Shown here: positions 13,707 through 37,100 of the stretch, in pieces
Layout of the letters: each line of letters begins with the position of its first letter
Position numbering within the stretch: the stretch's first letter is position 1
From: Dendrobates tinctorius
Lineage: Eukaryota
Direction of reading: 5' to 3'
Assembly (NCBI RefSeq): GCF_039654945.1
Contig: NW_027361766.1
Coordinates: 36,890,001-36,954,000, forward strand
Length of the DNA stretch: 64,000 nucleotides
The notes under the pieces: model-generated
Told to the model about the DNA's origin: nothing
Seen by the model: the letters and a program-made list of their open reading frames with translations, nothing else
Database searches by the model: none
Made by a program: the position numbers and the translations under genes

Positions 13707-14320
13707 TCTACTATGTAATCGTCTAAATCTGTCTGTCTGTCTGTAACGGAAATCCTGCATCGCTGATTGGTCGCACCTGGCTGGCCGCGACCAGTCAGCG
13801 ACAGGCGCAGTCGAACAATGCACACCACCGCTACCGTCAGGAGATCTGCAACGCTAGCCGCTGATCTCCCGGAGGTTGGCCCAAGTCATCTCCTGCCACA
13901 CGGAGGTCATCGGTGACGCAGCTGTGAGATGACCAGTGCAGCGCTCAATGTGCGGATGGTACCCAGGGTTCGGCGGAGAGGAGACTCTCATCCAGGCCCT
14001 GGGTACCATAAACCTGTAAAAAATAGAAGTAAAATAAAAAATAGTGATATACTCACCTTCCGACGGCCCCCACACTCTTTCCTTCCTCTCACCATGCGAC
14101 CGGCATCTTCCGGTCCCAGTAATGCTTTGCGCGAAAGACCGCTAAAGACATTGCGCTTTTGCGAGAGTGACGTCATCTCCGGTCCTTTGCGCAAAGCATT
14201 ACTGGGACCGGAAGATGCCGGGAGCATATAAAGGAGATCGGGGGCCGACGGAAGGTGAGAATAACCCCCGCTGGCCATATTCTAGAATACCTGATGTGTT
14301 AGAATCGGTCCACAATCTAG
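13707..14320 (+). mobile_element. Non-autonomous Helitron with an internal ~215-bp hairpin
   Basis: A|TCTACTATGTAATCGTCTAA 5' end, subterminal hairpin then CTAG|T at 14320. Inverted repeat at 14049-14262. Confidence 0.82.
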
Positions 14321-16740: not shown

Positions 16741-18160
16741 CCGTATATACTCGAGTATAAGCCTATTCGAGTATAAGCCAAGGCACCTAATTTTAACACA
16801 CAAAAAAACTGGGAAAACTTATTGTCTTGAGTATAAGCCTGGTATGCATTGTCCCCTCATCCTGATAATGGTAAGCATGGCTCCTCATAACTATCCTGGT
16901 ATGCATGGCTCTTCATCCCTATCCTTGTATGCACGGATCCTCATCCGTATCTTGGCATGCATGGCTCCTCATCTCTATCCTGGTATGCATTGCCCCCTCA
17001 TCCCTATCCTTGTATGCATGGCTCCTCATCTATATCCTTGTATACATGTCTCCTCATCTATATCCTTGTTTGATTGGCCCCCATCCTTATCCTGGTATGC
17101 ATGGCTACATCCCTATCCTTATATGCATGACCTCATCCCTATCCTTCTGTGCATGGCCCCATCCCTATCCTTGTATGCATGGTTCCATCCCTATCCTTGA
17201 ATGCATGGTCCCATCCCTATCCTTGGATGCATGGCTCGATCTCTATCCTTGAATGCATGGCTCCATTCCTATCCTGGTATGCATGGCTCCAACCCTGTCC
17301 TTGTATGCAAGGCCCCATCCCTATCCTTGTATGCATGGCTCCTCATCTATATCCTTGTATGCATGTCTCCTCATCCCTAACCTTGTTTGATTGGCCCCCA
17401 TCCCTATCCTTGTATGCATGGCTACATCCCTATCCTTATATGCATGACCTCATCCCTATCCTTCTGTGCATGGCCCCATCCCTATCCTTGTATGCATGGT
17501 TCCATCCCTATCCTTGAATGCATGGCCCCATTCCTATCCTTGCATGCATGGCTCAATCTCTATCCTTGAATGCATGGCTCCATTCCTATCCTGGTATGCA
17601 TGGCTCCAACCCTGTCCTTGTATGCAAGGCCCCATCCCTATCCTTGTATGCATGGCTCCTCATCTATATCCTTGTATGCATGTCTCCTCATCCCTATCCT
17701 TGTTTGATTGGCCCCCATCCCTATCCTTGTATGCATGGCTACATCCCTATCCTTATATGCATGACCTCATCCCTATCCTTCTGTGCATGGCCCCATCCCT
17801 ATCCTTGGATTCATGGCTTGATCTCTATCCTTGAATGCATGGCTCCATTCCTATCCTGGTATGCATGGCTCCAACCCTGTCCTTGTATGCAAGGCCCCAT
17901 CCCTATCCTTGTATGCATGGCCCCATCCCTATCCGTGTATGCAATGCCCCATCATTATCCTGGTATGATTGGCCCCAGCAAAAAACATAAAAAAAAATTA
18001 TACTTACCTTTCTGCGCTCCATCGCAACATCTTCTTCTGGTGCCAGCAGCTGCTTTATGCTTGTAAGCAGCACATGGCAGGGACGTCATGCGCTGCTCAC
18101 AAGTAGAGCACAGCTGCTGCAATACTCACTGCTCCCCATGCCGGAACTTGCACACACGCG
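16741..18160. mobile_element. Tc2/pogo-type non-autonomous element, one end only, carrying a minisatellite
   Basis: Starts CCGTATATACTCGAGTATAAGCC with repeated CGAGTATAAGCC subterminal motifs. Second TIR not found. Confidence 0.65.
16838..17975. repeat. 26-28-bp minisatellite with a 317-bp higher-order period
   Basis: Core CATCCCTATCCTTGTATGCATGGCCC. Diagnostic variant CTGTGCATGG recurs at 17147, 17464 and 17781. Confidence 0.93.
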
Positions 18161-18300
18161 AAAAGCCATGAATGCCATGAAAATAGAACATAGGTAGAGA
18201 TAAGTATGAAGATGTGCATTGATAAAAAGGGGGGCAAATAAAGACCGTTAAGGGGTTTCTTTTGCAAAGGAAGGGGGGACAATAGGGGACAATATCTCAA

Positions 18301-18342
<42 letters not shown>

Positions 18343-18456
18343 TATATATATATATATATATATACATATAGGAAGGAAGGGTGGACAATAGGGGACAATA
18401 TCTCAACTATATATATATATATATATATACATGCAGTATATACACATATATATATA

Positions 18457-18796
18457 GAAATATGAGAAAATTAGGATCCAGCAAAAGGATGAAAGTTCAC
18501 CAGGACCTAGGACCGTGAGGAAGGCACATAGTGCCGAAACATGTAGTCCCTTGCTGGAATGCTACTAATTGATTGGAGTTTCTCATATTTTTCATGATAT
18601 AATGGATTAATAAAGAAGAAGTTTTTACAAATCTGGTGAACTTTCATCCTTTTGCTGGATCCCAATTTTCTCATATTTTTATTTGTTGGTGCATACTCCC
18701 TGCCTGGATCCGTGCAAAGTATAGGGTGAACACCGATTACTGCATCAAGAAGAACTCCTTTATGGTGAGCTGGCTATATGTTTTTCACATTGTTTG

Positions 18797-18800
<4 letters not shown>
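18457..18800 (+). mobile_element. Short Penelope-like pseudo-LTR fragment with inverted 5' end, inserted in (TA)n
   Basis: About 46-bp inverted repeat (18458-18503 vs 18633-18678) enclosing a hammerhead-like motif; TA microsatellite on both sides. Confidence 0.62.
18510..18549 (+). ncRNA. Variant minimal hammerhead motif
   Basis: GGAC C-G-TGAGGA A GGCAC-ATA-GTGCC GAAAC AT GTA GTCC: stems I and II close, palindromic ACAUGU, one extra nucleotide after C3. Confidence 0.62.
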
Positions 18801-18838
<38 letters not shown>

Positions 18839-19005
18839 CAAACAATATATATATATATAAAAATAGTAGAAAAATTGGAACAGCACCAACAATACCTCCA
18901 GTGATGTGCAAAGCTTTCCCATCCATCAATCCAGTGGCTCCTCACAATAAAATCACTTTTTTGTTTTTTTGTGCTGCTCTTCTATTTTTTCATTATACAT
19001 ATATA

Positions 19006-20631
19006 TTTATATAATATAACGCTGTAAGCGTCGCTCTGTCTGAAGCCTTTATAGGCTGTGCAAACGCGACACGCCTGCGCAATCTGGCTCCAAACACAAC
19101 GAGGCATCCAGCGTTACAGGTAATAGGTATGGCGCCGGAGATTGCGGTACGCGTAGACACTGCATACCGCGATCTCTGGCGCCATATTTACGTACTTACC
19201 TCACCGGGAGGAGTGTTGCCATGGCGCTTCTCTTCTTCCGGAGATCGGGGCAAGAGTGCATGTGAGAATCGTGCATGCGCATAGCGCTATCTGGCGTCAT
19301 TTTACTGAAGACACATTTGCAGTGCGCCTTCAGCAATATGGCGCCGGACAGCGCGGTATGGGCATGCGTGTACTCCAGTGCCACACTCCTCCCACGGCAT
19401 CTGACAGAATGGGACAGTGTTGGAATACAGGAAAGAAGGGTGAGTATAAATGTTTTTTCTTTTTTGCATGTGTGCAGTTTAATAGGGGTGAGGGGGACAT
19501 TGCATACCAGGATAGGGGGGTGAGGGGGACCATGCATAGGAGGAAAGGGGGATGAGGGGGACCATGTATACCAGGAAAGGGGGCTGAGAGGACCATGCAT
19601 ACCAGGATTAGGGGGTGAGGGGACAATGCATACCAGGATAGGGGGTGAGGGGACCATGCATACCAGGATAGGGGGGTGAGAGGTAGCATGCATACCAGGA
19701 AAGGGGGTGAGGGGACCATGCATACCAGTAAAGGGGGGTGAGAGGACCATGCATACCAGGAAAGGGGGGTGAGGGGGACCATGTATACTAGGATTGGGGG
19801 GTTCAGGGGACCATGCATACCAGGATAGGGGGGTGAGAGGACCATGCATACCAGGAAAGGGGGTTAGTGGACCATGCTTACCAGGAAAAGCAGGTTCAGG
19901 GACCATGCATAACAGGATAGGGGGGTGAGGGGACCATACATACCAGGATTGGTGGGTGAGGGGACCATGCATACCATGATTGGGGGTGAGAGGACCATGT
20001 ACACCAGGATAGGGGGGTGAGAGGACCATACATATTAGGATAGGGGGGTGAGAGGACCATGCATACCAGGATTGGGGGGTGAGGGGTAGCATGCATACCA
20101 GGATAGGGGGGGTGAGAGGACCATGCATACCAGGGAAGGGGGTGAGAGGACCATGTATACCAGGGTTAGGGATGAGGGGACCATGCATACCAGGATTGGG
20201 GGGTGAGGGGTACCATACATCCTACGATAGGGATGAGGTGGGACCAAGCATACCAGGAATGGGGGGTGAGGGGACCATGCAACCATGCATACCAGGATTG
20301 GGGGGTGAGGGGACCATGCATTCCAGGATTGGGGGGTGAGAGGACCATGCATACCAGGATTGGGGGGTGAGGGGACCATGCATACCAGGATTGGGGGGTG
20401 AGGGGACCATCCATACCATGATAGGGATAAGTGGGTACCATACATACCAGGATTGGGGGGTGAGGGAACCATGAATACCAGGATATGGATGAGGGGGTAC
20501 CATGCATACCAGGATAGGGATGAGGGGTGCCATGGATACCAGGATAGGAGGGGGGCAGCGCATACCAGGATGGGAGACCATATACCAATAAAATTGCTCA
20601 CCACCCGGGTGTAGAACGGGTTCATAGCTAG
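19006..20631 (+). mobile_element. Non-autonomous Helitron with G-rich minisatellite
   Basis: 5' TTTATATAATATAACGC (TC start degenerate), 3' hairpin ACCCG...CGGGT then CTAG|T at 20628-31. Confidence 0.8.
19480..20575. repeat. ~31-33-bp G-rich minisatellite
   Basis: Unit GGGGACCATGCATACCAGGATAGGGGGTGA, about 35 copies. Confidence 0.95.
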
Positions 20632-20646
20632 TATATACTGTATATA

Positions 20647-20915
20647 CAGTTAGGTCCATATATATTTGGACAGAGACAACATTTTTCTAATTTTGGTTCT
20701 AGACATTACCACAATGAATTTTAAACAAAACAATTCAGATGCAGTTGAAGTTCAGACTTTCAGCTTTCATTTGAGGGTATCCACATTAAAATTGGATGAA
20801 GGGTTTAGGAGTTTCAGCTCCTTAACATGTGCCACCCTGTTTTTAAAAGGGACCAAAAGTAGTTGGACAGATTAAATAATTGTAAGTAAAATGTTCATTT
20901 CTAGTACTTGGTTGA
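20647..20915. mobile_element. Tc1-like terminal fragment
   Basis: TA|CAGTTAGGTCCATATATATTTGGACA terminus; truncated. Confidence 0.7.
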
Positions 20916-20938
20916 AAGGACAAGAAAACCACAAGAAG

Positions 20939-20979
<41 letters not shown>

Positions 20980-21247
20980 CCTCATTATTACCTCATATAT
21001 TACCTCATTGCTCACCTCTGCTGTATAAATCACCATAGATATGTATATACCTATATCTCCTAAGTTTAGTATGAACTGGTGTTTTGTGAGACTAAAAATG
21101 AAGAAAATGTCCAGCTCTAGGATGTAGTGAAAATATAAGATTCTTTTATTCACTCCAATCCATGTAGTACAAACGGGGTTAAAATGCCAGTATAATACAG
21201 AAAGTTGCTTGCATTCTCAACGCGTTTCTAGTGACTGCGCACCCTAA

Positions 21248-21644
21248 AGGGCCTGTCACACTAAGTGATATCGCTAGCAATATCGCTATAATGTCACTGG
21301 TTTTTGTGACGTTATAGCGATATCTCTAGCGAAATCGCTATGTCTGATACTTGCCTCCGACCGCTCCCCCGCTGGTTATCGCTGATCGCGCGAGAGCATC
21401 CTGGACTGTTTCTCGTCATCAGCTTCCTGCTGGGGCTTCCTGCTGTGACGACGAGCAACGCTTGGAGGCAGGCGGGAGGACATCTGGATCGCCGCGTCTG
21501 ACAGGTAAGTAACGACCCCCAACCTCTGCTATGTCGCTGGTGAGATCTGCCTGTGTGGCAGCTCACTAGCGACCACTTAGCGATGCACCAGCAATCCATA
21601 TCGTTGTCGGGATCGCTGGTGCATTGCTAAGTGTAACGGTACAC
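21248..21644. mobile_element. Harbinger-type MITE inserted in the inverted pseudo-LTR
   Basis: Interrupts CACCCTTAGTCATG (intact at 22254). Inverted relative of 31308-31702. Confidence 0.8.
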
Positions 21645-21915
21645 ATAGTCATGATGTCAAGCAATGTTATAGACAGACCTTTATGCTGAATTCGGTCAAC
21701 ACACTGGTAAGATAATTAATCAATTAACAAAGTGAAAACACATGCAGTCTCACAAAACAAATCAGAAATTCCAACTCACCAGAAACCGCATCTTGACCAT
21801 TGGAGCAAGGAGCCTCCATGTCAGGGCGCTTGTAACACCAAAAATGAAGAAAATGTCCAGTTCTACGATGTGGTGAAAATATAAGATTCTTTTATTCACT
21901 CCAATCCATGTAGTA

Positions 21916-22178
21916 TGGAAAGACTAGAAGCAATGCGATGAAAATGAATGGGAGGAGACACAGATTAAATATTAGAAAAAACTTTTTGACAGTTAGAGTG
22001 ATCAATGAGTGGAACAAGCTGCCACGAGAAGTGGTGAGTTCTCCTTCAATGGATGTCTTCAAACAGAGGCTGGACAGACATCTGACTGGGATGATTTAGC
22101 GAATCCTGCTTTGAGCAGGGGGTTGGACCAGATGGCCCAGGAGGTCCCTTCCAACTCTACGATTCTATGATTCTATGA
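21916..22178 (+). mobile_element. CR1 LINE 3' fragment
   Basis: WNKLPREVV..FKQRLDRHL ORF2 tail, GGTCCCTTCCAAC and (ATTCTATG)n end, TSD TAGTA (21911-15, 22179-83). Confidence 0.93.
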
Positions 22179-22799
22179 TAGTACAAGCGAGGTTAAAATG
22201 CCAGCATAATACAGAAAGTTGCTTGCGATCTCAACGCGTTTCTGGTGACTGCGCACCCTTAGTCATGATGTCAAGCAATGTTACAGACTGAACTTTATGC
22301 TGAATTCGGTCAACACACCGGTAAGATAATTAATCATAATACAGCATAATACAGAAAGTTGCTTGCGCTCGCAACGCGTTTCTGGTGACTGTGCATCCTC
22401 AGTCATGATGTCAAGCAATGTTACAGACTGAACTTTACGCTGAATTCGGTCAACACACCGGTAAGATAATTAATCAATTAACAAAGTGAAAACACATCAA
22501 ATACAAGCACATTTAAAACAGACACATTAAAAATCCCCAAAGGGGAATAACAAGTTCACAAATGACTCAAAAGTGCAATCAGAATAATTAACAGTGTGCA
22601 TACAAAATATAGCATACTTTATACAAGGAAATTCACTTATATTTAATCATATATATACACACAATTTTCTTAATTTCTTTCTCTTGTAATTGTTCTTGTA
22701 TTTTCTTCTATTCATATTCACTGTATATTGTGCCAAACTCTTCATATGGGAAAGAGCAAATAAGAGGAATAATGATAAAATATTTTTCTGGATATTTGT

Positions 22800-25133
22800 A
22801 CTTATTATCATTTGGACTAGCCTTCGTTCCTAGTTGTGAGTTTAATCTTTTTCTAGAATATGTGATATCAATAGATTCATTAGAAATTTAACATTGAGAC
22901 TGCATTTTGAGGATAATACAAGTGGGTGTGATAAAATCCAGAATGTATCTGATAATGTGTATAACAAATGCTCATTTTTAGAACAAGTATCGTTAATGTG
23001 TCTGCAAAATTTACAGCGTGAAAGTCTAAAAACTACAGAGAGTTTTGTTTCTCCTATGAGAAACCTGTATATTCCAAATCCCAGTTATTATCCAGTGAAG
23101 GCCAGGAAACCGGTGATGGATAAGTGTCAAAATGTTGTTGAAAATGAACTTAGAAATCTATCTGAAAAAATGTCAAAAAAGAGTTCAGCCAACAACAATT
23201 TGAAACCACCACTAAAAAAAGCCTTACAAGAAATAAAAAATAATGATAATCTTGTAATTAAAAATTCAGATAAAGGCGGATCGATTGTTTTAATGAACAA
23301 GGTTGATTATATGAATGGGTAGAAAAAATGCTTAATGATCCAATGATTTACAAACGGGTATCTATGGATCCCTCTTTGGAAATCAAGAACCGCATTTTCA
23401 AAACTATTGATGAAGGATACAGTGCCGTTATTTTGAGTTTAAAAGAAAAAGAGTATTTAAAAGTTCTTAATCCTGTAACACCAACACTGTATGCCCTTCC
23501 AAAAACCCACAAAAAAGTTTATCCCCCACCCATGAGACCGATTGTATCGGGTATTGAATCGGTGGGTGAAAAATTAGGTGAATGGTTAGATCTTCTTTTA
23601 CAACCTTTAGTTCAAAGGGTCCCTGGTTTTATTAGGGATAGTACTGATGTATTGAGTATGATTGACGGCCTAATCTGAGAAAATAATTTTTCTTGGATAA
23701 CAGCGGATGTTGTTTCACTTTACACTGGAATCCCCCACAAAATAGCAATAAATGCGCTAGAATTCCACTTGTGCAAATACAGCAATTTTCCTCCTGAATT
23801 CCAAAGATATATAATGGAGGTTGTTCATTTATTAATTTCGAACAATTACTTTCTTTTCAATAAAGAGTACTATATACAGACAAATGGTGTTTCTATGGGG
23901 GCAAAATACTCCCCCTCATTAGAGAATTTGGTCATGAGCTGGTGGGAGGAGTTATTCATCTATAGCAGTGACAATCCATTTATTGATTGTATCCAGTTTT
24001 ATGGAAGATTTATTGATGATATCATCATAATTTGGAAATCAGAGATATCTATTATACAGGATTTCAATTTGTATCTCAATAATAATACGTCAAATCTCAA
24101 ATTTACAGTAAGACATGAAATTTCCAATATTGAGTTTTTGGATTTAAAATTTGAGGGAATAGTCAATGAACCTGTGGCCACATGCACATTTAGAAAGGAC
24201 ACAGCTGGTAATACAATATTGCATGCCAAAAGTCACCATCCGAGACACACTATCAAGAGTGTTCCGCTTGGTGAAATGACGCATGCAAAACGCAATTGCA
24301 GCAGGTATGATGACTATGAGAAAGAAGTGTCCAATATTAAAAAACATCTGAGTAACAGAGGCTATAATAATTGGAGTTTGGACATGGCTGAAAAAATCGT
24401 AGCAAAAAAACCCCGATTTAACGACAAAATACTACTGATAAACTTGTTAATCCCGTAACCTTAGCGTTACAATATAGTAACCAATTTTCATCTATTAAAA
24501 GAATAATCAAGGATAATCTATCTATCTTAAAAGAAGATCCTAAGGTTGAGGAAATGATCAGAAATGGATTTAGAATTGTTTCAAGAAAAGCGCCTTCTAG
24601 TAAACAAAGCTTGTCACCGAGTTTTTTACATGAGCCTCAGAAAAATACCACTAATTGGTTAAATGTAAATGGTTTTTACAAATGTGGTGCGTATTCATGT
24701 AAAATGTGAAAGTATGCTAACAAATGTAGAAAATTTGGAGATTGGAACAATGGTCAATTTTATGAGATCAAAGATTTCATAAACTGCAGTTCCAAAAATA
24801 TTGTCTATGTCATAAAATGTACGACCTGTCCGCTGAAATAGATGGGGAGTACGAAACGCACATTAAAAACTAGAATCAGGCAGCACATTCATGACGTGGA
24901 GAATTTCAATGCCTAGTAGAAATGTATCCCAAGTTTCTAAACATTTTATTGAAGCCCACAAAAATAAATTAGATTCATTGTTAGTGTATGGCATAGAAAA
25001 AATACATAGACCAATTAGAGGCGGTGATACAGAAACCATATTAAGAAGCAGAGAAGCGTGGCGGATTTTCAAGCTGAACAGGAGAGTACCCCGAGGTTTA
25101 AACAAAAGAAAGGACATCATGCTTTTTTATTAA
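22800..25133 (+). pseudogene. Reverse transcriptase plus GIY-YIG ORF of the Penelope-like element (stops and frameshifts)
   Basis: SDKGG, LYALPKTHK, RPIVSG, DVVSLYT, QTNGVSMG, RFIDD, SHHP motifs; CSSKNIVYVIKC..GSTKR..RIRQH; REAWRIFKL..PRGLN. Confidence 0.93.
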
Positions 25134-26106
25134 TGTTTGGATAGCTTTATTTAATGAAACAATAATTTTGAGATATACTCAGTTATCATTAAATCGATCT
25201 ATTTGCATAGAATTGTTATAGTTCAAGAAAAACATGCGATTTTCCATATTTAATTGTGTACATATAATATCATGAAATTAATAAGATGTGAAATAAAAAG
25301 GTATAAGGAGTAAGGAAATAGGTAAGGTGATGTGATAGATTTATCTCATGTTGCAGTTTTTGTGAATACTATCATTGTGATTTAGTTATTTATAACCTTT
25401 TATGTGTTTTTTTAGGTATAAATATCTAGACAAATATTTTACCACTATTTCTCTCACTTGCTCTGTCCTATATGAAGAGTCTTGTGCAAAACACAGTGAA
25501 TAAGAATATAAGAAAATATAAGAACAATTATAAGAAAAAGAAATTAAGAAAATTGTGTTCACATATATGAGTAAATATAAGTAAATTTTCTTATATAAAG
25601 TACACCATAGTTTGTATTGCAACTTTGAGTCATCTTTGAATTGTTATTCCCCCTTTTTTCGTTGCAGCTTTTGTGACTACTATTATCTCCAATTTGGTTA
25701 TTTATAACCTTTTTGCGTTTTTTTCAGTTCAAATATCCAGAAAAATATTTTATCGTTATTCCTCTTATTTGCTCTTTCCCACATGAAGAGTTTGGCGCAA
25801 TATACGATGGATATGAAAATAAGAAAATACAAGAACAATTACAAGAGAAAGAAATTAAGAAAATTGTGTGCATATATGTAAAATATAAGTGAATTTCCTT
25901 GTATAAAGTATGCTATATTTTGTATGCACAGTGTTAGTTATTCTGACTGCACTTTTGAGTCATTTGTGAACTTGTTATTCCCCTTTTGGGATTTTTAATG
26001 TGTCTGTTTTAAATGTGCTTGTATTTCACGTGTTTTCACTTTGTTAATTGATTAATTATCTTACCGGTGTGTTGACTGAATTCAGCATAAAGTTCTGCCT
26101 GTAACA

Positions 26107-26166
26107 TTGCTTGACATCATGACTAAGGGTGCGCAGTCACCAGAAACGCGTTAAGAGCGCAAGCAA
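26107..26166 (+). ncRNA. Non-canonical hammerhead-like motif of the pseudo-LTR (inverted copies near 21210, 22220 and 22360)
   Basis: TTGCTTG/CAAGCAA outer stem, core CATGACTAA, stem GGTG/CACC, GAAACGCGTT. Confidence 0.5.
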
Positions 26167-27425
26167 CTTTCTGTATTATGCTGGCATTTTAACCTCGCTT
26201 GTACTACATGGATTGGAGTGAATAAAAGAATCATATATTTTCACCACATCGTAGAACTGGACATTTTCTTCATTTTTGGTGTTACAAGCGCCCTGATACG
26301 GCGGCTCCTTGCTCCCGTGGTCAAGATGCGGTTTCTGGTGAGCTGGAATTTCTGATTTGTTTTGTGAGACTGCAGAGGATGATATAGAACATTCAATTTC
26401 CAGAGAATAACTTATGGGCATAATTTGGTGAATTCGAATTTTGGCAGAACCGCTCATCTCTAGTGTTTACCTGAACAATTTTGAATATGTTCTAATTTAT
26501 TCTCAATGTGGAAATAGCTGCACTCAGTGTAATTAACGTTCCTAAAGGGATCTCAAATGTTTCAAGTAAACTGGTACTTAAATTTAATTATTATTTATCA
26601 TCTTTTTTTTTAATGAGTCCCTTGTGGAGTAAGAGCAAAGACATATAACTATAAATACCAATGTTTTAGTCCTGCATCACATATGAACTATCACTCTACA
26701 CTGTATCGAGGGTAAGTTACCAATCATTACATTTGTAATGACATGGGATTGGAGATAGTGTTTTCTAAATATTCTCTGCCTTGAAGGACTAATGTTTTGT
26801 AATGTAGCAGCATATTATGATGATTACATATGAACAAAAAATGTAAATGAATGAACTCCTTGTTTTCTACTGTAACTTGCAATCTTCCAGCATTCCTTCT
26901 ACACTTTGCATTAGAGAAAGGAAGGAGTTAAAACAACCCGCATTTGACCTGCATCTTAAGCTAGTTAATGATGTAACATTATTTCTTTACATCTTCTGTA
27001 GAGTGAGTTACTAGACCTACAGTCAGCATGCTAGAAAACACTCATTGTGATAAATGCTATAGAAATAGATAAACCAACATTTTTTCACAGTCTCTCCTCT
27101 AATAGAAATGCGAAGATTAGAGTTAAGTGAATCTTTAAAAAATATTTTATTTATTTTCTAGCTGACGAATCAGACAGTTTGCTGCAAACCTAAATCTTGC
27201 AAACCATATTTATATATTTACTTTTTCATACTTCTATCTTAATAATTAACATCATACCAATTTTCTATCAGTCTCAAACTTGAGAAAACAATCGCATAGT
27301 TTCTATTCAGAGCTAAAGAAGGATTAGGAACCTGAAAAGCAATTATTAGCAATAGCATGCTCATTTCGCCTCTATGATGTATGTATTGCATTGATGTTTT
27401 TCTGTGGATAAAACAGCTCCATTAA

Positions 27426-27847
27426 GGGGAATCTGTCACATCATTTTTGGCCTATGAGATGCAGCCACCGCCATCAGGGGCTTATCTACAGCATTCTGTA
27501 ATGCTGTAGATAAGCCCCCGATGTAATCTGAAAGATAAGAAAAACGAGTTAGATTATACTTACCTGGGGGTGGTCCGGTCCGATGGGTGTCGCGGTCTGG
27601 TCTGGCGCCTCCCATCTTCTAGTAATGACGTCCTCCTCCTTACTTCTGCCACAGCTCCTGTGCAGGCGTAATATATCTGCCCTATTGAGGGCAGAGCAGA
27701 GTACTGCAGTGCGCAGGCGCCGGGAAAGGTCAGAAAGGTCCGGCACCTGAGCACTTGTGCACTGCAGTACTTTATAGAATGCTGTAGATAATCCCCTGAT
27801 GGTGGTGGCCGCATGTCATGAGGCAAAAATGAGGTGACAGATTCCCT
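27426..27847. mobile_element. T2/Kolobok-type MITE, copy A only
   Basis: TIR RGGGAATCTGTCAC, TTAA TSD; single TTAA at the empty site in copy B (51843-46). Confidence 0.9.
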
Positions 27848-28363
27848 TTAAGCATTTTCAGTGGGATCACCATTTTTTTCTTTTACATTCCATATATATT
27901 TGACAGAAGGAAAACCTCTGTCTATCTCTATGAAACTCGAGATGTATGGAAGTGCATTTGGAGCGCCAACGTGGATGAAGGATGCCATACAAAGGCTCCA
28001 AACTCCTTAGTTTTTCCTAGGCATTGCCCCACCATGTGCTTAGCTCCTTCATCACACAAAGTAATTTCACAAATATAAATAATCCAAATTTGTCAAAGAA
28101 AATCAAAAGGTCAATATAACAAAATTTAAATGATTTCCCAGATAGATACATATATACATACATATCTCCGCTGTAGAGGTTTACAACCTTTTTTTTACGC
28201 CTACTTGGGTGTTTGCTTTTTACTCGTAAATATTGGTATTGTTATTACTATAATTGCTATTTTATACAGCAGATGACATTTGCCGTGAATACTATGATAT
28301 GATAAAAATAAGTCTCCTCCTTTTTCAGGTTGCACAATTGTCAGCTTCCTCTGCAGATGCACA

Positions 28364-29305
28364 ATGGGGTTCCGCTTATTGATAAAATCTTTTGCTTTTG
28401 TTCTTCTTGTGGTTTTTGGTATCCCGGGAAATGTCTACATTGTGATCAAATTTTTGCACATTAGGATTTTGGAAAAGAAGCTCTTACCTACTAACACCAT
28501 ACTAATGACACTCTCAGTTGTTAACATTTTTGTGCTTCTGTCCCGTGTCATGTTACAGGCTCTGAACGCCATTGGATTAGAAAATATCTTGAATGATGGA
28601 GAATGCAGATTGTTTATCTTCACTTTTAGAGTTAGTAGAGCCATGTCGATTTGTGTAACCAGTTTGCTTAGCTGCCACCAGTGTATACTTATTGCACCAG
28701 CCAATAAAAAGTGGAAATACCTCAAACAAATAGTAAACCCAAATGTTTCAATTATATTGGCAATGCTTTTAGGAATGAACATGTCACTTTACCCTGCTGG
28801 TATTTTATATGGACGAGCACAATCCAATGATACCCTCTCACCGTACACATTGCGCCTAGCATACTGTGATGTTGACTTTCTAAACTATCTAACCTATATT
28901 ATTAATGGATTGGTATCTGCGGTTCGAGAAATTATATTTGTGGGATTAATGATCCTTTCCAGTACCTATATTGTATATGTTCTCCATAATCATGGTAAAG
29001 CCATGAAGGGAAAGCGCAGTTCAGACAAAGTACAAAACAAGACAATTGAGTATAAAGCTTCGAAAGCAGTCATTATGTTTGTCATAATGTATGGACTATT
29101 GTTTGGCATGGATAACTGCATGTGGATATATACTATAACTATGTCCAACGTAGGCTCTGATGTCAGTGACACTCGATTATTCCTTGCTGCCTCTTATGCA
29201 GTGCTGAGCCCATATCTAATTTTTGCTACTAACCCTAAAGTAAACCAAGGATTCAAAAACCCATTCAGAAGAGAAAGGATTGAAAGAAAAATAGGTATTT
29301 CTTGA
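28364..29305 (+). CDS. Vomeronasal type-1 receptor (V1R / ORA-like) GPCR, 313 aa, duplicate A
   Basis: Intact 7TM ORF with GIPGN, FRVSRAMSICVTSLLSCHQCILIAP..W.YLK and YAVLSP. Pyrimidine-rich acceptor ending at 28328. Confidence 0.96.
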   Translation: MGFRLLIKSFAFVLLVVFGIPGNVYIVIKFLHIRILEKKLLPTNTILMTLSVVNIFVLLSRVMLQALNAIGLENILNDGECRLFIFTFRVSRAMSICVTSLLSCHQCILIAPANKKWKYLKQIVNPNVSIILAMLLGMNMSLYPAGILYGRAQSNDTLSPYTLRLAYCDVDFLNYLTYIINGLVSAVREIIFVGLMILSSTYIVYVLHNHGKAMKGKRSSDKVQNKTIEYKASKAVIMFVIMYGLLFGMDNCMWIYTITMSNVGSDVSDTRLFLAASYAVLSPYLIFATNPKVNQGFKNPFRRERIERKIGIS

Positions 29306-29385
29306 CCAAGCAATTACCATTCTCAGATCATTACACTATTGTAGCGATTTAATTGCACTTTCTATTATACTGAAATAGAAGTTAA

Positions 29386-29759
29386 AGGGGTTGTCCATTA
29401 CTCTGACGGCCCTTCTCCATCCCTGTTTCCCCCCATTTGTGTCGGCACTGGCTCTCCTAGTGATTGTGTGACATTGTTATGTCACGCGATCTCTGTGGCC
29501 AATCAGCTTCCGTCACCCCTCCTTTGGACAAATAAAGACATCCGAAGGAATTCAGAGCAGCCACAGCTATCATTCGCTTTGGATGTTAATTATGTTCATA
29601 GGGGGAGAGTTAAGCCAGCTCTGATTGATTGAAAGCATCACGTGACACAACAATGATGGCAAGTCCCGACAACACTGGAATGGTGAGTAGAAGTGTTATT
29701 ATTTTACTTTGGAGAACCTACACATTGAGAAGGGATTGTCTGAGTAGTGGAAAACCCTT
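29386..29759. mobile_element. T2/Kolobok-type MITE just 3' of V1R copy A
   Basis: TTAA|AGGGGTTGTCCA...TGGAAAACCCTT|TTAA; also present in copy B at 53409-53781, so older than the duplication. Confidence 0.8.
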
Positions 29760-30662
29760 TTAATTTTCAATGGAAAAATGTAGAAGAGATACATTTGACA
29801 AATCCCTGAGAACTAGGTTTGTTATTTAACACAAGCATTATTGGTATGCAAGATTTTCACTGTGGCTTTATTCAGTGCCTATAGGGAACAGGTAACTATA
29901 CCATTTGTATATAGCCTGTGGACACAAGCCTCAGCACAATTGGTCTGACTAATATATCTGGTGTGGAGTAGGTTATCAGTAGACAATACCATTTCATATA
30001 ACTTATTATGCCAGTAGAAGGGGACAGCTAAGTTGTACCCTTTTTCTATGAGCCAGAAAAGAAATCTGCCTAAAGAATTGGTTTCCATAATGAGATTTGA
30101 GATAACCTTACAGTATATATAATGCTACACATAACACTTGTTGAAACTTCCCCTGGCAATAACATTTTTAAAATACTGTAGTTATCTTTGATGACAGCAT
30201 GATGTGTTAATAAATTGTGCTGCAATAAAAGATATACGTGTACATACTATTTCAGACAGAAGATCATTAGGAATTAGAAAAGCAGTTGTGAACAAAATGA
30301 AATACAGTAGAAAGCTACATGTAATAAATGTGGACATGTGATCTGTTACTGTGTTCAGGAAAGTTTTAATTGAATATGATGTTGTATGATGCTTAAAGGG
30401 TTTTCCCACAAGCAAATGTAATTTTAATCAATAAATTTAAAAAAAAATTCCACATTTGGTTGTGATTAAATAAAATGCTTCTGTCCTGAGATAATCTTAT
30501 AATGTGCCCCTGCTGTGTACTGTGTAATGGTTGTGTCTGACTGCACAGAATTTTGGTTTGATCATACTACATCTCCTGGGCAGGGGAGGAAGCAAAAGAG
30601 TATATAGAAATTACAGCATGGGATCACAAAGAATTCTTTCTTTGAGGTAAAACATAGCCTAA

Positions 30663-31232
30663 CCCCTTCACGACAAGCGCCATACTAGTACGGTACATAT
30701 CGTGTCTCCCCCTTTGATGTGGGCTTCAGCGGTGAGATCACTTCTTTTCCGGCACGTCAGCTGTTTTGAACAGCTGAAATATGCCCGGAACAGCTGTGGG
30801 TGGAATTGCGATCCACCCGAGGCTTTCAACCCGTTGAATGCTCCTGTCAAACTTTGACAGCAGCATTTAATGCTCGCTTCCGGCCATCAGGCCTGAAATT
30901 CGCTCATCGGTGTCCTTTGTCACGTGATCGTGGGTCACCGATGGGTTGGCATGACAACCAGAGGTCTCCTGGAGACCTCTATGGTCACTGACGGCTTGCT
31001 GTGATTGTCACCCGGCAGTCGGCGCTCATAGCAAGTGAGGTATTCTGCTACGTACAGGTGATCTGATCATCGCCTGTATGTAGCAGAGCAGATCGGGTTA
31101 TGGCAGCTTCTAGTCTTCCATGGAGACTTTTGAAGAATGCCAAATGTAAAAAAATATGTTTTAAAAAATATTAAAAAGATAAAAAAATACAAAAAGTTTA
31201 AATCCCCCCCCTTTTGCCCCATTCAAAATAAA
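30663..31232. mobile_element. Truncated piggyBac-type non-autonomous element inside an older T2 MITE (about 30397-31831)
   Basis: CCCCTTCACGAC terminus; matches the left half of 54729-55980. Confidence 0.72.
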
Positions 31233-31307
31233 TATTTTGCTTGGTCCTCTGCCCAGGAGCTGTGGTATGATCAGACCATGTCCCTGCACGGTCAGACACA
31301 GCCATTA

Positions 31308-31702
31308 GGGTACCGTTACACTTAGCGATGCACCAGTGATCCCGACCACGATATGACCTGGTCAGGATCGCTGATGCATCACTAAGTGGTCGCTAGTGAG
31401 CTGCCATACAGGCAGATCTCACCAGCGACATAGCAGCGGTCGGGGGTCGCTACTTACCTGTCAGACGAGGCGATCCTGACGTCCTCCTGCCCGCGTCCAC
31501 ACGTCGCTCGTCGGCACCACAGGAAGCCCAGCAGGAAGTGGCCGGCGAGAAGTGGCCCAGGACGTTCTCGCGCGATCAGCAATAATCAGCGGGGGAGCCG
31601 GTCGGAGGTAAGTATCACACATAGCGATATCGCTGCTGTGTCACAAAACCAGTGACATTACAGTGATATTGCTAGCGATATCGCTTAGGGTTAACGGGCC
31701 CA
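31308..31702. mobile_element. Harbinger-type MITE, copy A only
   Basis: TTA TSD (31305-07, 31703-05); empty site near 56054. Confidence 0.87.
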
Positions 31703-31846
31703 TTACACAAGACACAGCAGGGGCACATTTATAAGATTATCTCACCACAGGAAAAAAATTTTAAACACATCCAATTGTGAAATGTATGAAGATCTATTGA
31801 TTAGAATGAACTTTATTCATGGGACAACCCTTGAAGCTGTGACTAA

Positions 31847-32407
31847 AGCCCCCGTCACACACAGCACACCCCGTCACACAAGTTTTGTGACGCAGCAGCG
31901 ATCTCACCAGCGAGATCGCTGTGTGTGACACTTTACCAGTGACCAGCCCCCTGCCGGTTATCACTGATCATCCTGGAATGGCCAGGACATTTTTTTGATC
32001 TCTGGTCTCCTGCTGGCCAGCATGCATCGCTGCGTGTGACAGGCGACAGACCAGCGATCAGCGAGCAGGAACTGGTAACTAAGTTAAACAGAGGGTTTCT
32101 AAGCGGCGTGCAGCGCTTAGAAACCCGATGTGTACTTTAGTTACCAGCGCGCTGGTGCAGGGAGCTGGTAACCAAGGTACACATCGGGTTTCTAAGCGGT
32201 GTGTGGCATCAGCGCGCTGGTAACTAAGGTACACAGTGGGTAACTAAGCGACGTGCGTCGCTTGTTACCCCCGTGTTGCTGGTGCTGATCGCTGGTGAAG
32301 CTGCCTGTTTGGCAGCTCACCAGCGATCATATAGCGACACACCAGCGATCCTGACAAGGTCATATCGTTGCCGGATCGCTGGTGCATCGCTATGTGTGAC
32401 GGGGCCC
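31847..32407. mobile_element. Harbinger-type MITE, copy A only
   Basis: TIR RGSCCCCGTCACAC, TAA TSD; single TAA at the empty site near 56239. Confidence 0.9.
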
Positions 32408-33498
32408 TAAGTGTTAGTATAATTTTGATATGTATATATTACAGTCATAGCAGCTCATACCTGTTCACACTTATGTCATTCTATGAAGAGGTGCTGCTCA
32501 GATTTGGGCTACATTTATATCACATTTTTCCTGTACATCAGTGGTTGTCATGAGGCTTCCGTCTGAAGCCTTGAAAAATGGGATTTGGGTGGATCTGATG
32601 ATGGGACTATTGAGTTTAGTGGGCTACTGCACTTTTGTTCCATCCTCAAAAAGGTGGCCACTGACAAAAAGAATGTCATAGAAAGCTCTTTCTGCTTCAT
32701 TTAAAGTCAAATTCCCAGCCAGCAGTAACACCCGGAATCCTGCTCATCAGAACTTCAGGCACTAGTCCAGATGGTGCCATTGACGTGACAAAAATGCAAT
32801 GAGAACCTGGCCTTATTTTGAAGTTCAGTTGGAGGCAGTAAATACCTCAATAGTTTGCTTAACACTCCACAAATCAGTCTAAAGTTGTTTTTAATTTATG
32901 CTGTATCCTATCCTAAGCTTCTACCCCAGGAGAGGTTAGAGCACACACAAATTTGCCAAATTGGGCTCCAAGTATCCCAATTTTATAGGTATAGTATATA
33001 AGGCATAATAAATCTTGAAGTTCATATATTCAATGTTTACATGTATCAGTCCAACTTTTTCTTAAATATGCATATACTGCAATCACAACAGCTTGCATTC
33101 TGTTAGGATGTGCTGGTCAGTTTTGTTTTATGTAAGTTTATGTTCAAATGCTCAGTAGTTACTTTAATTTCTAGATCTGTTTTGGCATCATAAAAAGGGA
33201 AATAAAATGTTCCTGTACTGGATCCATTCATTTGATCATAACTGAAGGGTCTTAAAATATTTTTTTTTTGTTTGCCTCTTTTCCAGCTGCTGGTTTTTAT
33301 CTAGATCAAAAAACATAGTTTACACAACTTTTTTGTTTTGCCCAAATAAACAGAGAGCAACTGCATCCATGTAAATTTAAATATATGGGCAAAAGATTAT
33401 AACAGATGTTTTTCATTTTTTATTTTTTGCTTCATTTGCTCTATTTGAAATAGTTCATGTTTTTTTCAATGTTTGTTCTGAAGGGAAGAAGACCGGGC

Positions 33499-34196
33499 TG
33501 TGGCTACCAATGAGACACCGGGTCCGGAACTGCCGGGGTCACGTCCGGTGTTGCAGGGGGGAAGAAATGGGAGACGGAAAAAAAAACATGATCCAGAGAG
33601 AAGGGACATGACAAGAGAAGGGAGGAGAGAGGGTTTAGCGTGGGAAGAGGCAGAGAGTTCCCACTGGAGAGGAGAGAGAGCAGGGACCTGCTGTGTGCCG
33701 CAGAGAGAGTTTGACTGCACGTTAGTAAGAGAGAACAAGGGCAGCGTACGCAGACAGGGAGAGTGTAGTGCAGGACTCCCAACCACAGAGCACATTAAAC
33801 GGGAGGGTGTTGTGCAAAACTTCCGATTGCAGAACATGCCAAGTGGGAGAGTGTGGTGCAAAACTCCTGACTGCAGAGCATGCCTAGTGAGAGATTCTGG
33901 TAAAGGACTCCCAGCTGCATAGCAGCGTGATGAACTAGGGGCTCAATGGGTCAGACCGGTGAACGCCCGTTGCTGCCAGAAGAGTGAGCACTGAAGGTCT
34001 CAGTACCGGCATCAACTGGATCTCAAATTCCGTTTCTGGAGGAGTGAACAGCAACAGACTCATGATAAGTGAAGCAGTTAAATGCATAGACTGCGGCCCT
34101 GAGTTATACTGTTCTTCATGTCATTTAGCTTAAAAATCTGTTTAACTCCTGGCTGACTCCCTGTAAGGAGAACCCCTATTGTGTTAATTAAGCCAC
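33499..34196. repeat. Purine-rich LTR-like repeat (duplicate at about 57272-57968)
   Basis: TGTGGC...GCCACA ends and a composition shift, but no TSD. Confidence 0.4.
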
Positions 34197-37100
34197 ATCC
34201 TTGTTAACCCTTGCTCTGCACATCTGTGTTACTGCATCCTTTTACCTGCTTTACAGTTCCATTACAAATGGATGCCAACTGGATATGTGAACAGAGCTTC
34301 AGAAGCGCCATTCAATTACATATGGAAATAACTAGATATTGAACAAGCACACAGATTGGGACAATGACTGTTGAGAGTCATCTCTGAAAGCTGCCCATGG
34401 TGGAGGCTGATGATTTTGCAAGATTTCTAACAATTACATTTTCAGAGATTAGAAGTAAGGGAAGGTGAGCTGTTAATTGCTATATAGAAAACAGTGGACT
34501 ATAGAGAAGTGGCTAGTATGTTAAGAGTTAACTGTTCCACTGGAATGTAACTACTGCACATTTTTGGCCCGTGCCTAGGCAGGCATCAGTTTCTTTACTC
34601 CATTAAAACCTGCTGTATAAAAAAATAAAGCTCTAAAATTAATTGCAAAGTTGCTTATTTTTGATTTTTTTCTTAGATTTTAATTTTTGGAATAAAATAC
34701 ATTTATTTTAAGCAATGCAATACCTAATGTCTTTCTGTTCTAGTCAGTTATGTTAGAACTTTTGCACAGTCTATTTTGCATATGCTGTGTATGTATTGTG
34801 AAAGTGATTTAGATCCTGTGACTTGCTCTCTATTGTATCTATCCTTTATACACCTGAATATGTTACTGTTTTGAAAATTAATAAATCGGACTTGGAAGAA
34901 GAATGTTGGCAGATTTTTCAGTTCACTCAGGGCCAGTATTAGTCTCACCCCAGGAAAATTTAAAAGTGGTGCCCTGAATTCTAACATATAATCCCTTTAT
35001 GAAATCTCTATATATGCAGGGAAACATGCCTCCAACCGTTAAAAGAGTTTCCACTTTCATGAGAACTGACATTGTACCCGGGGAAGGTAAATACTGTGTC
35101 AATTTATTAATTTATATACCGGAAAATCCTGAAAGTAGAAATTCCTTATAATATTGAGATAGCTTAAAATCTAAAACAGCTGTACTGCAATAGCAAACCA
35201 AGAGTAGATTTTCTGTTTTATCTTAAAGGGTTTTCACATCTGAAAAAATTTTCAGCAAGCTCTGTAGCTTTCTGGTTCCTAGAGGTGTGCATTGAACACA
35301 ACGTTAGGTTTTGGATTCACTTGCCAGCTCTGGCGGTTATAACTCAACCACAAGTATGCAATGTACAGTTATGTGCCTTCTACATTCTCAGCTGCTTCTC
35401 TCAATAGAACTCAATGACCCTTTATAGGAAGGAGGGAGTGGTCACACCTGCTGACTGATCAAATATGTAATAACACCAGCAGCCACCGGGGGGGGCAACC
35501 CAGCCGCAGACTCACTAAGCTTGTAGTAAAACCAGTGGCCACCGGGGCAAAACCCATATTAACCCCCGAGGGCCAGAAAGGAAAAAGGTAAGAGTCCAGA
35601 CTTTGACAGATCCAAAAATCCCAGCGCTGCGTCTCCTGCTGTTTTTTTACATAAACAATGGCACGTGGCTGTTGAAAGGCTGCAGTCATTCCTATTCTAT
35701 CAAAGTCGAAGAATAGTGAAGGCTGCAGCTAGTCAGCAGTTGCTGAATTAATAGAGGTCATGTGATATTGATGTCATGATGCTGATACATAACAGCACTG
35801 TGATCATAGGAATAGCGCCAGTATGGGAGGTAAGTGTAGAGTGTATTTTGTGCTGCACCTTGGGACTAAGAAGAAAGGGTAGTCCAGTAGTGGACAACTA
35901 CTTTAATAATTTATGAAATCTTCTCTTGGCTTGTTTTTGATAAACACCCTTTTGTAAAGGTTATAGTACCTCTCTTTTCTTGGGTTTTTCCACTTTCATG
36001 GTTCTCCCCTGTAATGGCTAGCACTCAGTGTTCAGAAGATTTGTTCCTGATTATTAGCCCATGTAAACATGCCAGTGATAATATAAACTGATGAATAAGC
36101 AAAAACACTGAATTATTTATGACAAATCATTAAAAATCATGGCTATTGACTGCACATTGCACGGTGTACACAGAGGGTGGACTGCTAGTAACTAGAATGA
36201 GTATGTGGTGACATACAGTATTAATAATTTTTGTGTTGTCATCATTTCTTAATGATTCATGAAAACAAGCTAGAAAATAAGTGCTGATCGAATTGTATAA
36301 AGCCAGTCTGCACTCATTACTAGGTCAAAATCAGCAATAATTGAAAATACAGGGTGGCCTAAAAGTCACAAGACTACTTAAAAATAGAATAACTATAGTG
36401 TGTATTAAACATGCACAGTTATTATTTTACAAGCAATAAATATACTTCTTGGAAATTATTTTTATTTAGTTTTGTAGGTTATGACTGTAAGCTTGGCTAA
36501 GTGTGGAGGCCAATAGAATTCAGAGTTTCGTGAAATTATCTGCAGTCAAAAAATTTGTCTTACGATTACGTTTTGTGCCTCATTCTCAAATAAGGGCCAA
36601 GAACTCTTTATCTGCTTAAACCGCACCAAACCGTTACTTTTATGCCTCTCTCTTACATTAATAAAACAGATAGTTTTTTTGTACATTTGTGGAAAAGTCA
36701 CATTTGCAAATGTGAAACTTGACTACCATGATAAGGAAAGCTTACAACCTGTATTTTGGCTGCAGAATAGGGGATCAGGACAAAAGTTGGGCTCCACACA
36801 TACTACAATCTTATGCTTTTCTGCATTTCTAATTATCTGCATAAAGCCAACCAATCACACTACCAATTGCAATTTCTCTATGATGCACTCCATTAAAAGG
36901 AGTTTCAAGGAAGAAGCGAAATTTATAGTATCCAAACAGTCCATCTGCAATACACCCAGTACCATATACAGATGAACTGCTGGCTCCAAAAGCACCAGAA
37001 ACACTTTCAGTTGAGTCAAGTGATGAAATGATTCCTGTCATGATGCATCTTCCTCTCACAGCACAGATTTTCTATAGGCAAGCTCAACTAAACCACAACT

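Follow-up and report, generated by a model that had tools for sequence, protein, structure and literature searches.

The window that we analysed, 64,000 nucleotides of Dendrobates tinctorius DNA (contig NW_027361766.1, positions 36,890,001 to 36,954,000), holds three V1R genes and a series of non-autonomous transposable elements, several of which contain a short CpG-rich core bordered by a strong 5' splice site. The original prediction held that this promoter-plus-5' splice-site layout recurs in unrelated Helitron, Tc2-type, T2 and Harbinger derivatives through convergence or through shared capture of first-exon fragments. Every motif that it listed was present at its coordinate. Donors were matched to the consensus MAG|GTRAGT, and all coordinates are window positions.

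Elements and their outward-facing donors

The T2-type elements have a TTAA target and TTAARGGG-type termini. The MITE at 27426..27849 has a TTAA target duplication, 80-nt terminal inverted repeats and a single outward donor, CCAGGTAAGTAT (27556-27567, minus strand; listed as ATACTTACCTGG at 27556), along with a YY1-like site (27604-27619), a CRE (TGACGTC, 27626-27632) and an NRF1-like site, TGCGCAGGCGC (27710-27720). Over the 36 nt past the donor come a CTAAC resembling a branch point, then a pyrimidine tract, then CAG. The DNA depth of this element is very high. The predicted identity of the donor region to the first 12 nt of U1 snRNA is present in this copy but is private to it: the family majority has C at 27561 (T>C), giving CCAGGTGAGTAT, which reads GTGAGT, keeps GTRAGT and is still a donor. 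A U1 snRNA gene or pseudogene was rejected because no Rfam family reached its gathering score in the window and the identity ends at 12 nt, after which the sequence differs from U1.

A second T2-type MITE (29386..29765), also with a TTAA target duplication, carries CCAATCAG at 29500 and TCACGTGAC at 29638, the latter followed by ATGATGG and then by the outward donor ATGGTGAGTAG (29680-29690, plus strand; listed as GGTGAGTA at 29682). Its copy number by DNA depth is low, and its paralog B has lost the G at -1/-2 and the E-box. The third element, a fragment at 35617..35895 (plus strand), has the donor GAGGTAAGTG at 35828-35836, and the motif is identical in a paralog at 59721-59745.

The Harbinger-like MITE at 31308..31705 (CpG o/e 1.10; TTA target duplication, read from the sequence) has two outward, non-palindromic donors, CAGGTAAGTA (31451-31460, minus strand; listed as TACTTACCTG at 31451) and GAGGTAAGTAT (31605-31615, plus strand; listed as AGGTAAGTAT at 31606). 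They flank a 148-bp core with a CRE (31477-31483) and CAGGAAG at 31520 and 31533. Empty-site joints from 31298/31301 to 31700 were found in DNA contigs; for the T2-type MITE at 27426, paralog B is uninterrupted with a single TTAA. These empty sites prove that both are real insertions of mobile TIR elements. The summed DNA depth of the Harbinger-like MITE is about 1 million, and neither donor departs from the family majority among the differences listed. CpG-to-TpG changes from that majority at 31488 and 31501 suggest that this copy is methylated. Individual module copies decay: a second, 82% identical copy at 21245..21642 (minus strand) keeps CAGGTAAGTA at 21502-21511 (plus strand), with its CRE reduced to GACATCT and the GT of its second donor changed to GC (21346-21358).

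On the homology of their arms, the donors that had been assigned to a Tc2-type element and to a Helitron belong to one inverted, satellite-bearing structure. The donors 18001(-) and 19439(+) lie in homologous inverted arms, 17078-18013 against 20526-19434. The arm at 17078..18013 (minus strand) has a satellite array with a 26-31 bp unit, a T-run and the donor AAGGTAAGTATA (18000-18009, minus strand; originally noted as ATACTTACC at 18000), whose exon-side core (18009..18290, minus strand) contains the CRE GACGTCA at 18082-18088. The partly palindromic, CpG-rich core at 19006..19447 (CpG o/e 0.84) has two outward donors, GAGGTAAGTA (19193-19201, minus strand; listed as TACTTACCTC at 19193) and GGGTGAGTAT (19438-19447, plus strand; listed as GGTGAGTAT at 19439), together with CTTCCGG at 19235, an NRF1-like site, GTGCATGCGCA, at 19271, AATATGGCGCC at 19335 (described originally as YY1-like) and ATGGCGCC words at 19130, 19177 and 19338. 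An array of 31-bp satellite units (19485..20631, plus strand) leads to a short hairpin (20603-20621) and then to CTAG plus T (20628-20632), both read by eye, which look like a Helitron 3' end. No convincing Helitron 5' TC end was found at 19006. Since the Tc2-type and Helitron sites share arms, there are fewer independent families than had been claimed.

Two further segments lie beyond the range first described. A palindromic cassette with the same layout (14048..14263; CpG o/e 1.15) has inverted arms at 14048-14080/14231-14263 and 14094-14141/14180-14227, the donor AAGGTGAGTAT (14050-14058, minus strand), a degenerate partner donor AAGGTGAGAAT (14252-14262, plus strand), a full CRE, TGACGTCA (14168-14175), and CCGGAAG at 14107-14113(-) and 14208-14214(+). 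In the GC-rich segment at 62940..63185 (plus strand; CpG o/e 0.87), AGATGGCG is followed by tandemly duplicated CCGGGTGAGTATG at 63134 and 63170.

Enrichment and composition of the modules

The predicted enrichment of donor words held at the scale of the window. GGTRAGTA occurs 15 times on the two strands against 2.6-3.5 expected (Markov-1/2/3 models, global or in 500-bp blocks), a count that none of 300 simulations reached. For AGGTAAGTA, 7 occurrences in the window compare with 0.55 in dinucleotide shuffles (0 of 100 reach 7), and donor words overall stand at 4-14 times expectation. Several sites are homologous pairs (18001/19439, 21504/31451 and 35829/59736); once paralogs were collapsed, about 12 independent GGTRAGTA sites remained against about 3 expected. 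Complementarity to U1 often extends to +7/+8, with GTRAGTAT observed 12 times against about 4 expected. Matches to the donor consensus at 9/9 positions fall at 14056(-), 18007(-), 21505(+), 27563(-), 31457(-) and 37305(+), and 8/9 matches at 19199(-), 19440(+), 31608(+) and 63137(+). Five of the six perfect MAGGTRAGT words lie in CpG-rich stretches, which make up about one fifth of the window.

Both GC and CpG content fall at the donor. At 13 of 17 sites, or about 9 of 12 independent ones, CpG is more frequent on the exon side than on the intron side; as evidence for the predicted orientation bias this is suggestive only. A strong donor was found in only about 8 of the 32 CpG-rich stretches of the window, so the layout is a property of some families, and the proposal of a general system across transposable elements was not borne out as a rule. 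Three donor words look like chance matches: the one at 5284 is a GGGTAACTAA repeat unit changed by mutation, and those at 11749 and 14419 lie in low-complexity, GT-rich and in AT-rich surroundings, respectively.

The cores are short (150-250 bp) and resemble CpG-island type promoters (CpG o/e >0.6, G+C >50%, typical factor sites): in five of them CpG o/e is 0.84-1.15, against 0.45 window-wide, and GC is 0.55-0.68. Compared with local dinucleotide shuffles, the cores are enriched for TGACGTC (5 against 0.14 expected) and for ETS-type CMGGAAG (5 against 0.47); SP1 and CCAAT words showed no enrichment in them. The four CRE (TGACGTC) sites of the window (14168, 18082, 27626 and 31477) each lie 18-125 bp upstream of a strong donor. 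The predicted layout is real and non-random: a CpG-rich core with CRE, ETS, YY1 or NRF1-like sites leads to a consensus 5' splice site, beyond which the sequence is AT/T-rich.

Its claimed recurrence in unrelated superfamilies survived in part. While some sites proved to be homologous, the T2-type, Harbinger-like and Helitron-like cores have no detectable similarity to each other beyond the donor word, which rules out a single nested repeat family as the source of the layout and points to separate acquisitions rather than one shared module. The T2-type MITEs at 27426, 29386 and 35617 likewise have end sequences in common and different cores, that is, unrelated internal segments between the same ends.

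Several other structures were considered. Introner-like elements, transposons removed as introns by means of an inward-facing donor at one end and an acceptor in, or made by, the other, were rejected since all donors face outward to the nearer end. A pyrimidine tract plus YAG within 50 nt of the donor, as in a mini-intron, was found at 27557(-) (36 nt) and 14050(-) (43 nt). With a background of 3%, two such cases among 12 independent sites are marginal. A looser case lies at 19439(+). As for reading frames that open at an ATG and continue into the donor, an ATG occurs at several sites, matching chance expectation, and at none in the Harbinger-like core. MITE donors were also rejected as a source of 5' exons for the V1R genes, as no consistent upstream plus-strand donor is common to the three. 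A good acceptor lies at 28320-28329.

We examined public sequencing runs as Logan contigs, keeping the best-supported rows; three of these runs were guessed to be RNA. In the latter, unique sequence including a V1R gene had zero depth, and repeat depth was proportional to DNA depth at a ratio of 0.002-0.02, so these runs show neither expression nor its absence. They behave as low-coverage DNA and are uninformative on splicing, and the lack of a transcription start, of a spliced read and of a joint or loose end at 27563, 31457 and 31608 among the best-supported rows is to be read in the same light. The donors are present in the family majority, with 27561 T>C as the sole in-donor difference listed, and the families with the clearest modules have summed DNA depths of about 0.7-1.0 million compared with about 13 for unique DNA.

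Origin of the modules

The explanation that we favour, tentatively and at a little under an even chance, is that the modules are captured gene 5' ends, comprising promoter, first exon and the start of intron 1, that were amplified as passengers of Pack-TIR-like elements and Helitrons. Between its transposon ends, each non-autonomous element would carry an RNA polymerase II gene 5' end: a short CpG-island-like promoter with CRE, ETS and YY1/NRF1-type sites; next a first exon, which would be very short; and a consensus 5' splice site leading into an AT/T-rich intron start. The outward orientation of the donors is the geometry of a promoter plus its first exon, and two outward donors would be expected if a bidirectional promoter had been captured, or in a foldback element. 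Most likely the pieces were copied from host genes, with TIR elements acquiring them through gap repair or template switching (the Pack-TIR type) and Helitrons through capture, and the composite elements then amplified, some perhaps to tens of thousands of copies. In an active copy, transcription would begin in the core, cross the donor and the terminal repeat and continue outward into the flanks. Splicing would then join the transcript to the next acceptor, as in an exon trap, or bound U1 would shield it from early termination. The origin by capture, the promoter activity and the splicing are what we infer from the sequence. Of the two origins first proposed, capture, which is documented for bat Helitrons and animal Pack-TIRs, fits better than convergence.

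Some observations sit less well with capture. The first exons would have to be very short, with a CRE only 18-125 bp from the donor, and several such families spread over several superfamilies in 64 kb exceed what the rare reported Pack-TIR events would predict. Complementarity to U1 as far as +7/+8 exceeds the needs of an ordinary donor and hints at selection for U1 binding. We weighed, as an unlikely alternative, a selected and convergent module, in which families that pair a germline-type promoter and a strong U1 site would spread better. A promoter-proximal 5' splice site might keep a copy transcribed, H3K4-methylated, unmethylated in its DNA and accessible to transposase; U1 might also block premature cleavage and polyadenylation, so that intronic insertions would be harmless in either orientation. 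Such selection would account for the same layout in unrelated cores, for the two outward donors of the Harbinger-like MITE, which are not palindrome arms, for U1 complementarity to +8 and for the highest DNA depth in the families with the clearest modules; in bats, too, Helitrons capture gene 5' ends in excess, and the families that did so reach the highest copy numbers (PMC4224331). However, the modules decay freely, as in the copy at 21245-21642, which no longer has the CRE or the second donor, and in paralog B of the MITE at 29386, where the E-box and the context of the donor are gone; most CpG-rich repeat segments in the window lack a donor; and the modules were first picked out by a motif-seeking reader, which biases ascertainment. 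The stronger form, in which several superfamilies owe their success in the frog lineage to hyper-complementary U1 sites on either side of a germline-type promoter, a module that would keep copies unmethylated and open to transposition and could make intronic insertions harmless in both orientations, seems to us more doubtful still.

Non-autonomous elements commonly retain subterminal sequence of their parents, and vertebrate Harbinger, Kolobok and Helitron genes contain introns. The modules might on this basis be leftover 5' regions of autonomous parents (transposase promoter, first exon and donor) in internal-deletion derivatives. A parental first exon would be expected near one end and facing inward, whereas every donor faces the nearer end: that at 27557 lies 135 bp from the left end and faces left, that at 29682 faces right, with the right end about 80 bp away, and the Harbinger-like MITE has one donor each way. 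The T2-type MITEs at 27426 and 29386, moreover, combine common terminal repeats with unrelated cores. The orientation is thus wrong for a transposase's own first exon, and we consider this origin improbable.

Slightly less probable again is that chance produced donor-like words in a small number of founders, whose amplification led to over-counting, with no gene-like origin or function: paralogous copies do inflate the raw counts, the words at 5284, 11749 and 14419 look accidental and the orientation test alone is weak, but the fourfold or so excess of GGTRAGTA outlasts paralog collapse, perfect 9-mers concentrate in CpG-rich cores, and every CRE of the window stands just upstream of a donor, an association that founder amplification does not predict.

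Relation to known systems and significance

Strong U1 sites just downstream of a transcription start favour productive elongation (the U1-PAS axis of promoter directionality, and U1 telescripting). That axis describes host promoters; by the same logic, donors flanking a core would make it productive both ways. Engineered insertional-activation transposons of the Sleeping Beauty T2/Onc type likewise place a promoter and a donor inside terminal repeats. These share with the frog elements a design that reads into flanking genes, but they are artificial, and the frog elements are putative activators.

Captured gene 5' ends fit a precedent in bats, where HelibatN3 contains the promoter of NUBPL together with six codons and a splice donor; its exon trapping has been shown experimentally (PMC4778049). 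Bat Helitrons and the frog elements are both non-autonomous, with a promoter (putative in the frog), a tiny first exon, a donor and thousands of copies (PMC4778049, PMC4224331). The bat donor is spliced to host acceptors further downstream, and the parent gene (NUBPL, others) is identified, whereas the frog elements are known from sequence alone. Most frog carriers are not Helitrons but TIR MITEs with TTAA/TTA targets; two outward donors occur in several of the elements, and their rough copy numbers are at least 10 times higher.

Pack-TIR and Pack-MULE elements resemble the frog elements in having terminal inverted repeats around a few hundred bp of non-transposon sequence, and they are often transcribed as chimeras (PMC8277862, PMC5861414). 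Frogs are among the animals richest in Pack-TIRs, and one multicopy frog case carries a 5' UTR (PMC8277862). Animal Pack-TIRs are, however, mostly single-copy and were found through a recognisable parental locus, whereas the families described here are of very high copy number and their putative host origin is read from the motif grammar. The Kolobok-T2 MITEs of Xenopus are, like ours, frog T2-type MITEs with an interior dense in transcription-factor motifs, which in Xenopus recruits p300 and is regulatory; the accessible portions of these reports describe them as enhancers with developmental and liver factor motifs and contain no promoter-plus-donor layout (PMC5655803, PMC12676858). A full-text literature search likewise did not find this layout in frog MITEs.

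Were the modules active, mobile units of promoter plus donor would number in the tens of thousands in a frog genome, and each could initiate transcripts and splice them into downstream sequence, as a natural counterpart of insertional-activation vectors at a scale far above the bat Helitron case. Should the selected grammar be true, tens of thousands of latent exon-trap promoters would have been seeded genome-wide. Activity would bear on the tolerance of transposon load in giant amphibian genomes, on the origin of new first exons and alternative promoters, and on the exploitation of U1 by transposons. Even as inert passengers, the modules would still be a record of several DNA transposon superfamilies preferentially capturing and amplifying the 5' ends of animal genes.

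Donor words and CpG-rich cores

The original prediction held that a promoter combined with outward-facing 5' splice sites recurs across unrelated non-autonomous transposon superfamilies, through convergence or the capture of first exons. All of the motifs on which it was built are present at their positions, and consensus 5' splice-site words (hereafter donors) clearly exceed expectation in the window. GGTRAGTA occurs 15 times on the two strands, against 2.6-3.5 expected under Markov-1, -2 or -3 models (global or in 500-bp blocks), a count attained in 0 of 300 simulations, and AGGTAAGTA occurs seven times against 0.55 in dinucleotide shuffles. Seven composition-matched scrambled words gave counts of 2-10, five of the seven falling at 2-5.

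Raw donor counts are inflated by paralogy. The donors at 18001 (-) and 19439 (+) correspond to each other across the arms of an inverted repeat (17078-18013 versus 20526-19434), those at 21504 (+) and 31451 (-) belong to two copies of one MITE family, those at 35829 and 59736 are duplicates, and a tandem pair lies at 63136 and 63172. About 12 independent GGTRAGTA sites are left, against about three expected. Three donor words appear accidental: a mutated GGGTAACTAA repeat unit (5284), a word within GT-rich low complexity (11749) and one within AT-rich DNA (14419). A perfect AAGGTAAGTA at 37303-37311 (+) lies outside any CpG core, at the border between a segment that is not CpG-rich and has broken frames and MITE-like sequence rich in GATA/TCGG repeats.

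Of 17 donor sites, 13 have more CpG on the exon side (upstream of GT) than on the intron side, as do roughly nine of the 12 independent ones; taken alone, this orientation signal is suggestive only. Perfect MAGGTRAGT falls within CpG-rich stretches, which cover about one fifth of the window, in five cases out of six. The strongest new result is the association between donors and the CRE word TGACGTC, whose four occurrences in the window (14168, 18082, 27626 and 31477; one a full palindrome) all lie 18-125 bp from a strong donor and on its exon side. We compared eight cores (short CpG-rich, promoter-like segments between transposon ends) with their own dinucleotide shuffles and found TGACGTC five times against 0.14 expected, CCGGAAG three times against 0.19 and CMGGAAG five times against 0.47. 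YY1- and NRF1-like words were marginal in this comparison, and SP1 and CCAAT motifs were not enriched. Because the motif list was picked after the finding had been read, the P values of these enrichments are descriptive. Observed/expected CpG is 0.84-1.15 in five cores and 0.45 in the window.

Carriers, their copies and the genomic setting

When all donor contexts were aligned locally in their orientation, the cores of the T2-type MITEs 27426-27849 and 29386-29765, the Harbinger-like MITE 31308-31705 and the Helitron-like element at 19006 showed no similarity to one another beyond the donor word. These alignments rule out a single nested family behind all instances, despite the shared arms at 18000 and 19439. 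The predicted unrelatedness thus held among the T2-type, Harbinger-like and 19006 cores, but the donor labelled "Tc2-type" (18000) cannot be counted apart from the "Helitron", with which it shares, in inverted orientation, a donor, a T-run and an array of 26-31 bp satellite units. The same donor-plus-T-run recurs in the cassette at 14050. About five independent carriers fall within 17999-35836, the range of the prediction. The two satellite arrays (16871-17977 and 19485-20553; unit 26-31 bp, about 1.1 kb each) are mutually inverted, and each starts directly past a donor-like word and T-run.

The composition, repeat content and three V1R (vomeronasal receptor) genes of the window are consistent with an anuran genome. 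These genes have intact plus-strand frames (5865-6932, 28364-29305 and 52364-53305; Pfam PF03402, 1e-37 to 3e-42) and place the window within a V1R cluster. A good 3' splice-site-like sequence (pyrimidine tract, then CAG/G) at 28320-28329, 35 bp 5' of a V1R start codon, suggests a non-coding upstream exon, but no such exon was located. A minus-strand open frame of 409 aa that encodes a BED zinc finger (43955-45184; PF02892, 9e-8) sits in a block of 52% GC at 38-46 kb and may belong to an autonomous element of hAT type. Another open frame, at 23769-24458 (+), has a weak reverse-transcriptase match (PF00078, 4e-5, under the Pfam cut-off) and is flanked by inverted repeats (22179-22802 and 25726-26206).

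One segmental duplication, about 9.8 kb long (26361-36178, copy A, versus 50781-60084, paralog B; identity 88-95%), with one V1R gene per copy, served as the source of paralogous copies to compare. Repeat content differs between 31232-32581 and 55299-56295. MITE 27426-27849 was gained by copy A after the duplication, as the target in paralog B is uninterrupted, with a single TTAA, and an empty site for MITE 31308-31705 was found in DNA contigs of the source organism. Summed contig depth, a crude measure, was 0.7-1.0 million for the two best modules against about 13 for unique DNA, which points to very high copy number; MITE 29386 is low copy by DNA contig depth.

We also compared the window copies with the family majority (the commonest state among an element's copies in DNA contigs). 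The only donor position among the listed differences is 27561, where other copies have C, giving CCAGGTGAGTAT. At 27556 the 12-nt match to the 5' end of U1 is therefore present here but private to this copy, the family majority still having a consensus donor. No difference among those listed touches the donors at 31451-31460 and 31606-31615. The second Harbinger-like copy (21245-21642) has lost its CRE (CpG to CA) and its second donor has changed from GT to GC, MITE 29386 in paralog B lacks the G at donor -1/-2 and the E-box, and CpGs in the core of the window copy at 31308 have become TpG relative to the majority. Since single copies decay, any function would lie at the level of source copies and not of host-level conservation of each insertion.

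Contig depths and intron-like units

Depth over 27300-32450 was compared among Logan contigs of one DNA run and three runs guessed to be RNA, none recorded as such. The guessed-RNA depth was 0.002-0.02 of the DNA run in every repeat bin, with or without a donor, and zero at the V1R gene in all three runs; among those listed, no joint or loose end falls at any donor, and the contigs resemble very low-coverage DNA. These depths match expectation for such DNA or unspecific background, and the runs are evidence neither for nor against expression of the modules. Rfam found no U1 or other RNA family anywhere in the window.

Contigs of the three guessed-RNA runs join 29439 and 29714 of MITE 29386 on opposite strands, a joint absent from those listed for the DNA run that may reflect a core-less foldback relative. 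At MITE 27426, the guessed-RNA/DNA depth ratio of the donor-side half (27472-27643) is 2-4 times that of 27644-27815, in contig depths too crude for interpretation. Mini-intron-like units, in which a pyrimidine tract and YAG follow a donor within 36-43 nt, occur at 27528-27564 (-), 14014-14056 (-) and 19440-19477 (+); the unit at 27557 also has CTAAC, and these lengths are at or below those of the shortest known vertebrate introns. The excess of such units is marginal (2 of 12 against a 3% background).

Origin of the modules

Read from the sequence, the modules would run from a CpG-rich segment of CRE/ETS/YY1 type through a short exon to a consensus donor where GC drops into T-rich sequence, which is apparently how the 5' end of a gene is built. 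Such pieces are known to be captured. In HelibatN3, the NUBPL promoter is present together with six codons and a donor, and exons are trapped upon mobilisation (PMC4778049), and bat Helitrons over-capture gene 5' ends, in families with the highest copy numbers (PMC4224331). A frog is among the species with most animal Pack-TIRs, one of which is a multicopy hAT that carries a 5' UTR (PMC8277862). From this anatomy and these precedents, captured gene 5' ends are tentatively the best explanation, with a probability approaching even. The donor would then face outward simply because a promoter reads into its first exon, and paired outward donors could come from bidirectional promoters or foldback duplication; the cassette at 14048-14263 is a true palindrome.

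The convergence named in the original prediction ranks second. A selected promoter-plus-U1 module is doubtful, at about one chance in four, and is favored by the non-palindromic outward donor pair of the Harbinger-like MITE, complementarity to U1 that extends through +8, and high copy numbers. Remnants of the parent elements' own first exons are unlikely and only third, because each donor is directed at the nearer element end. Chance followed by founder amplification is the least probable origin.

Xenopus Kolobok-T2 MITEs bearing factor motifs recruit p300 (PMC5655803). What is new here is that promoter-plus-donor modules occur in a frog in very many copies, both in TIR MITEs that represent at least two target-site classes and in a Helitron-like element.
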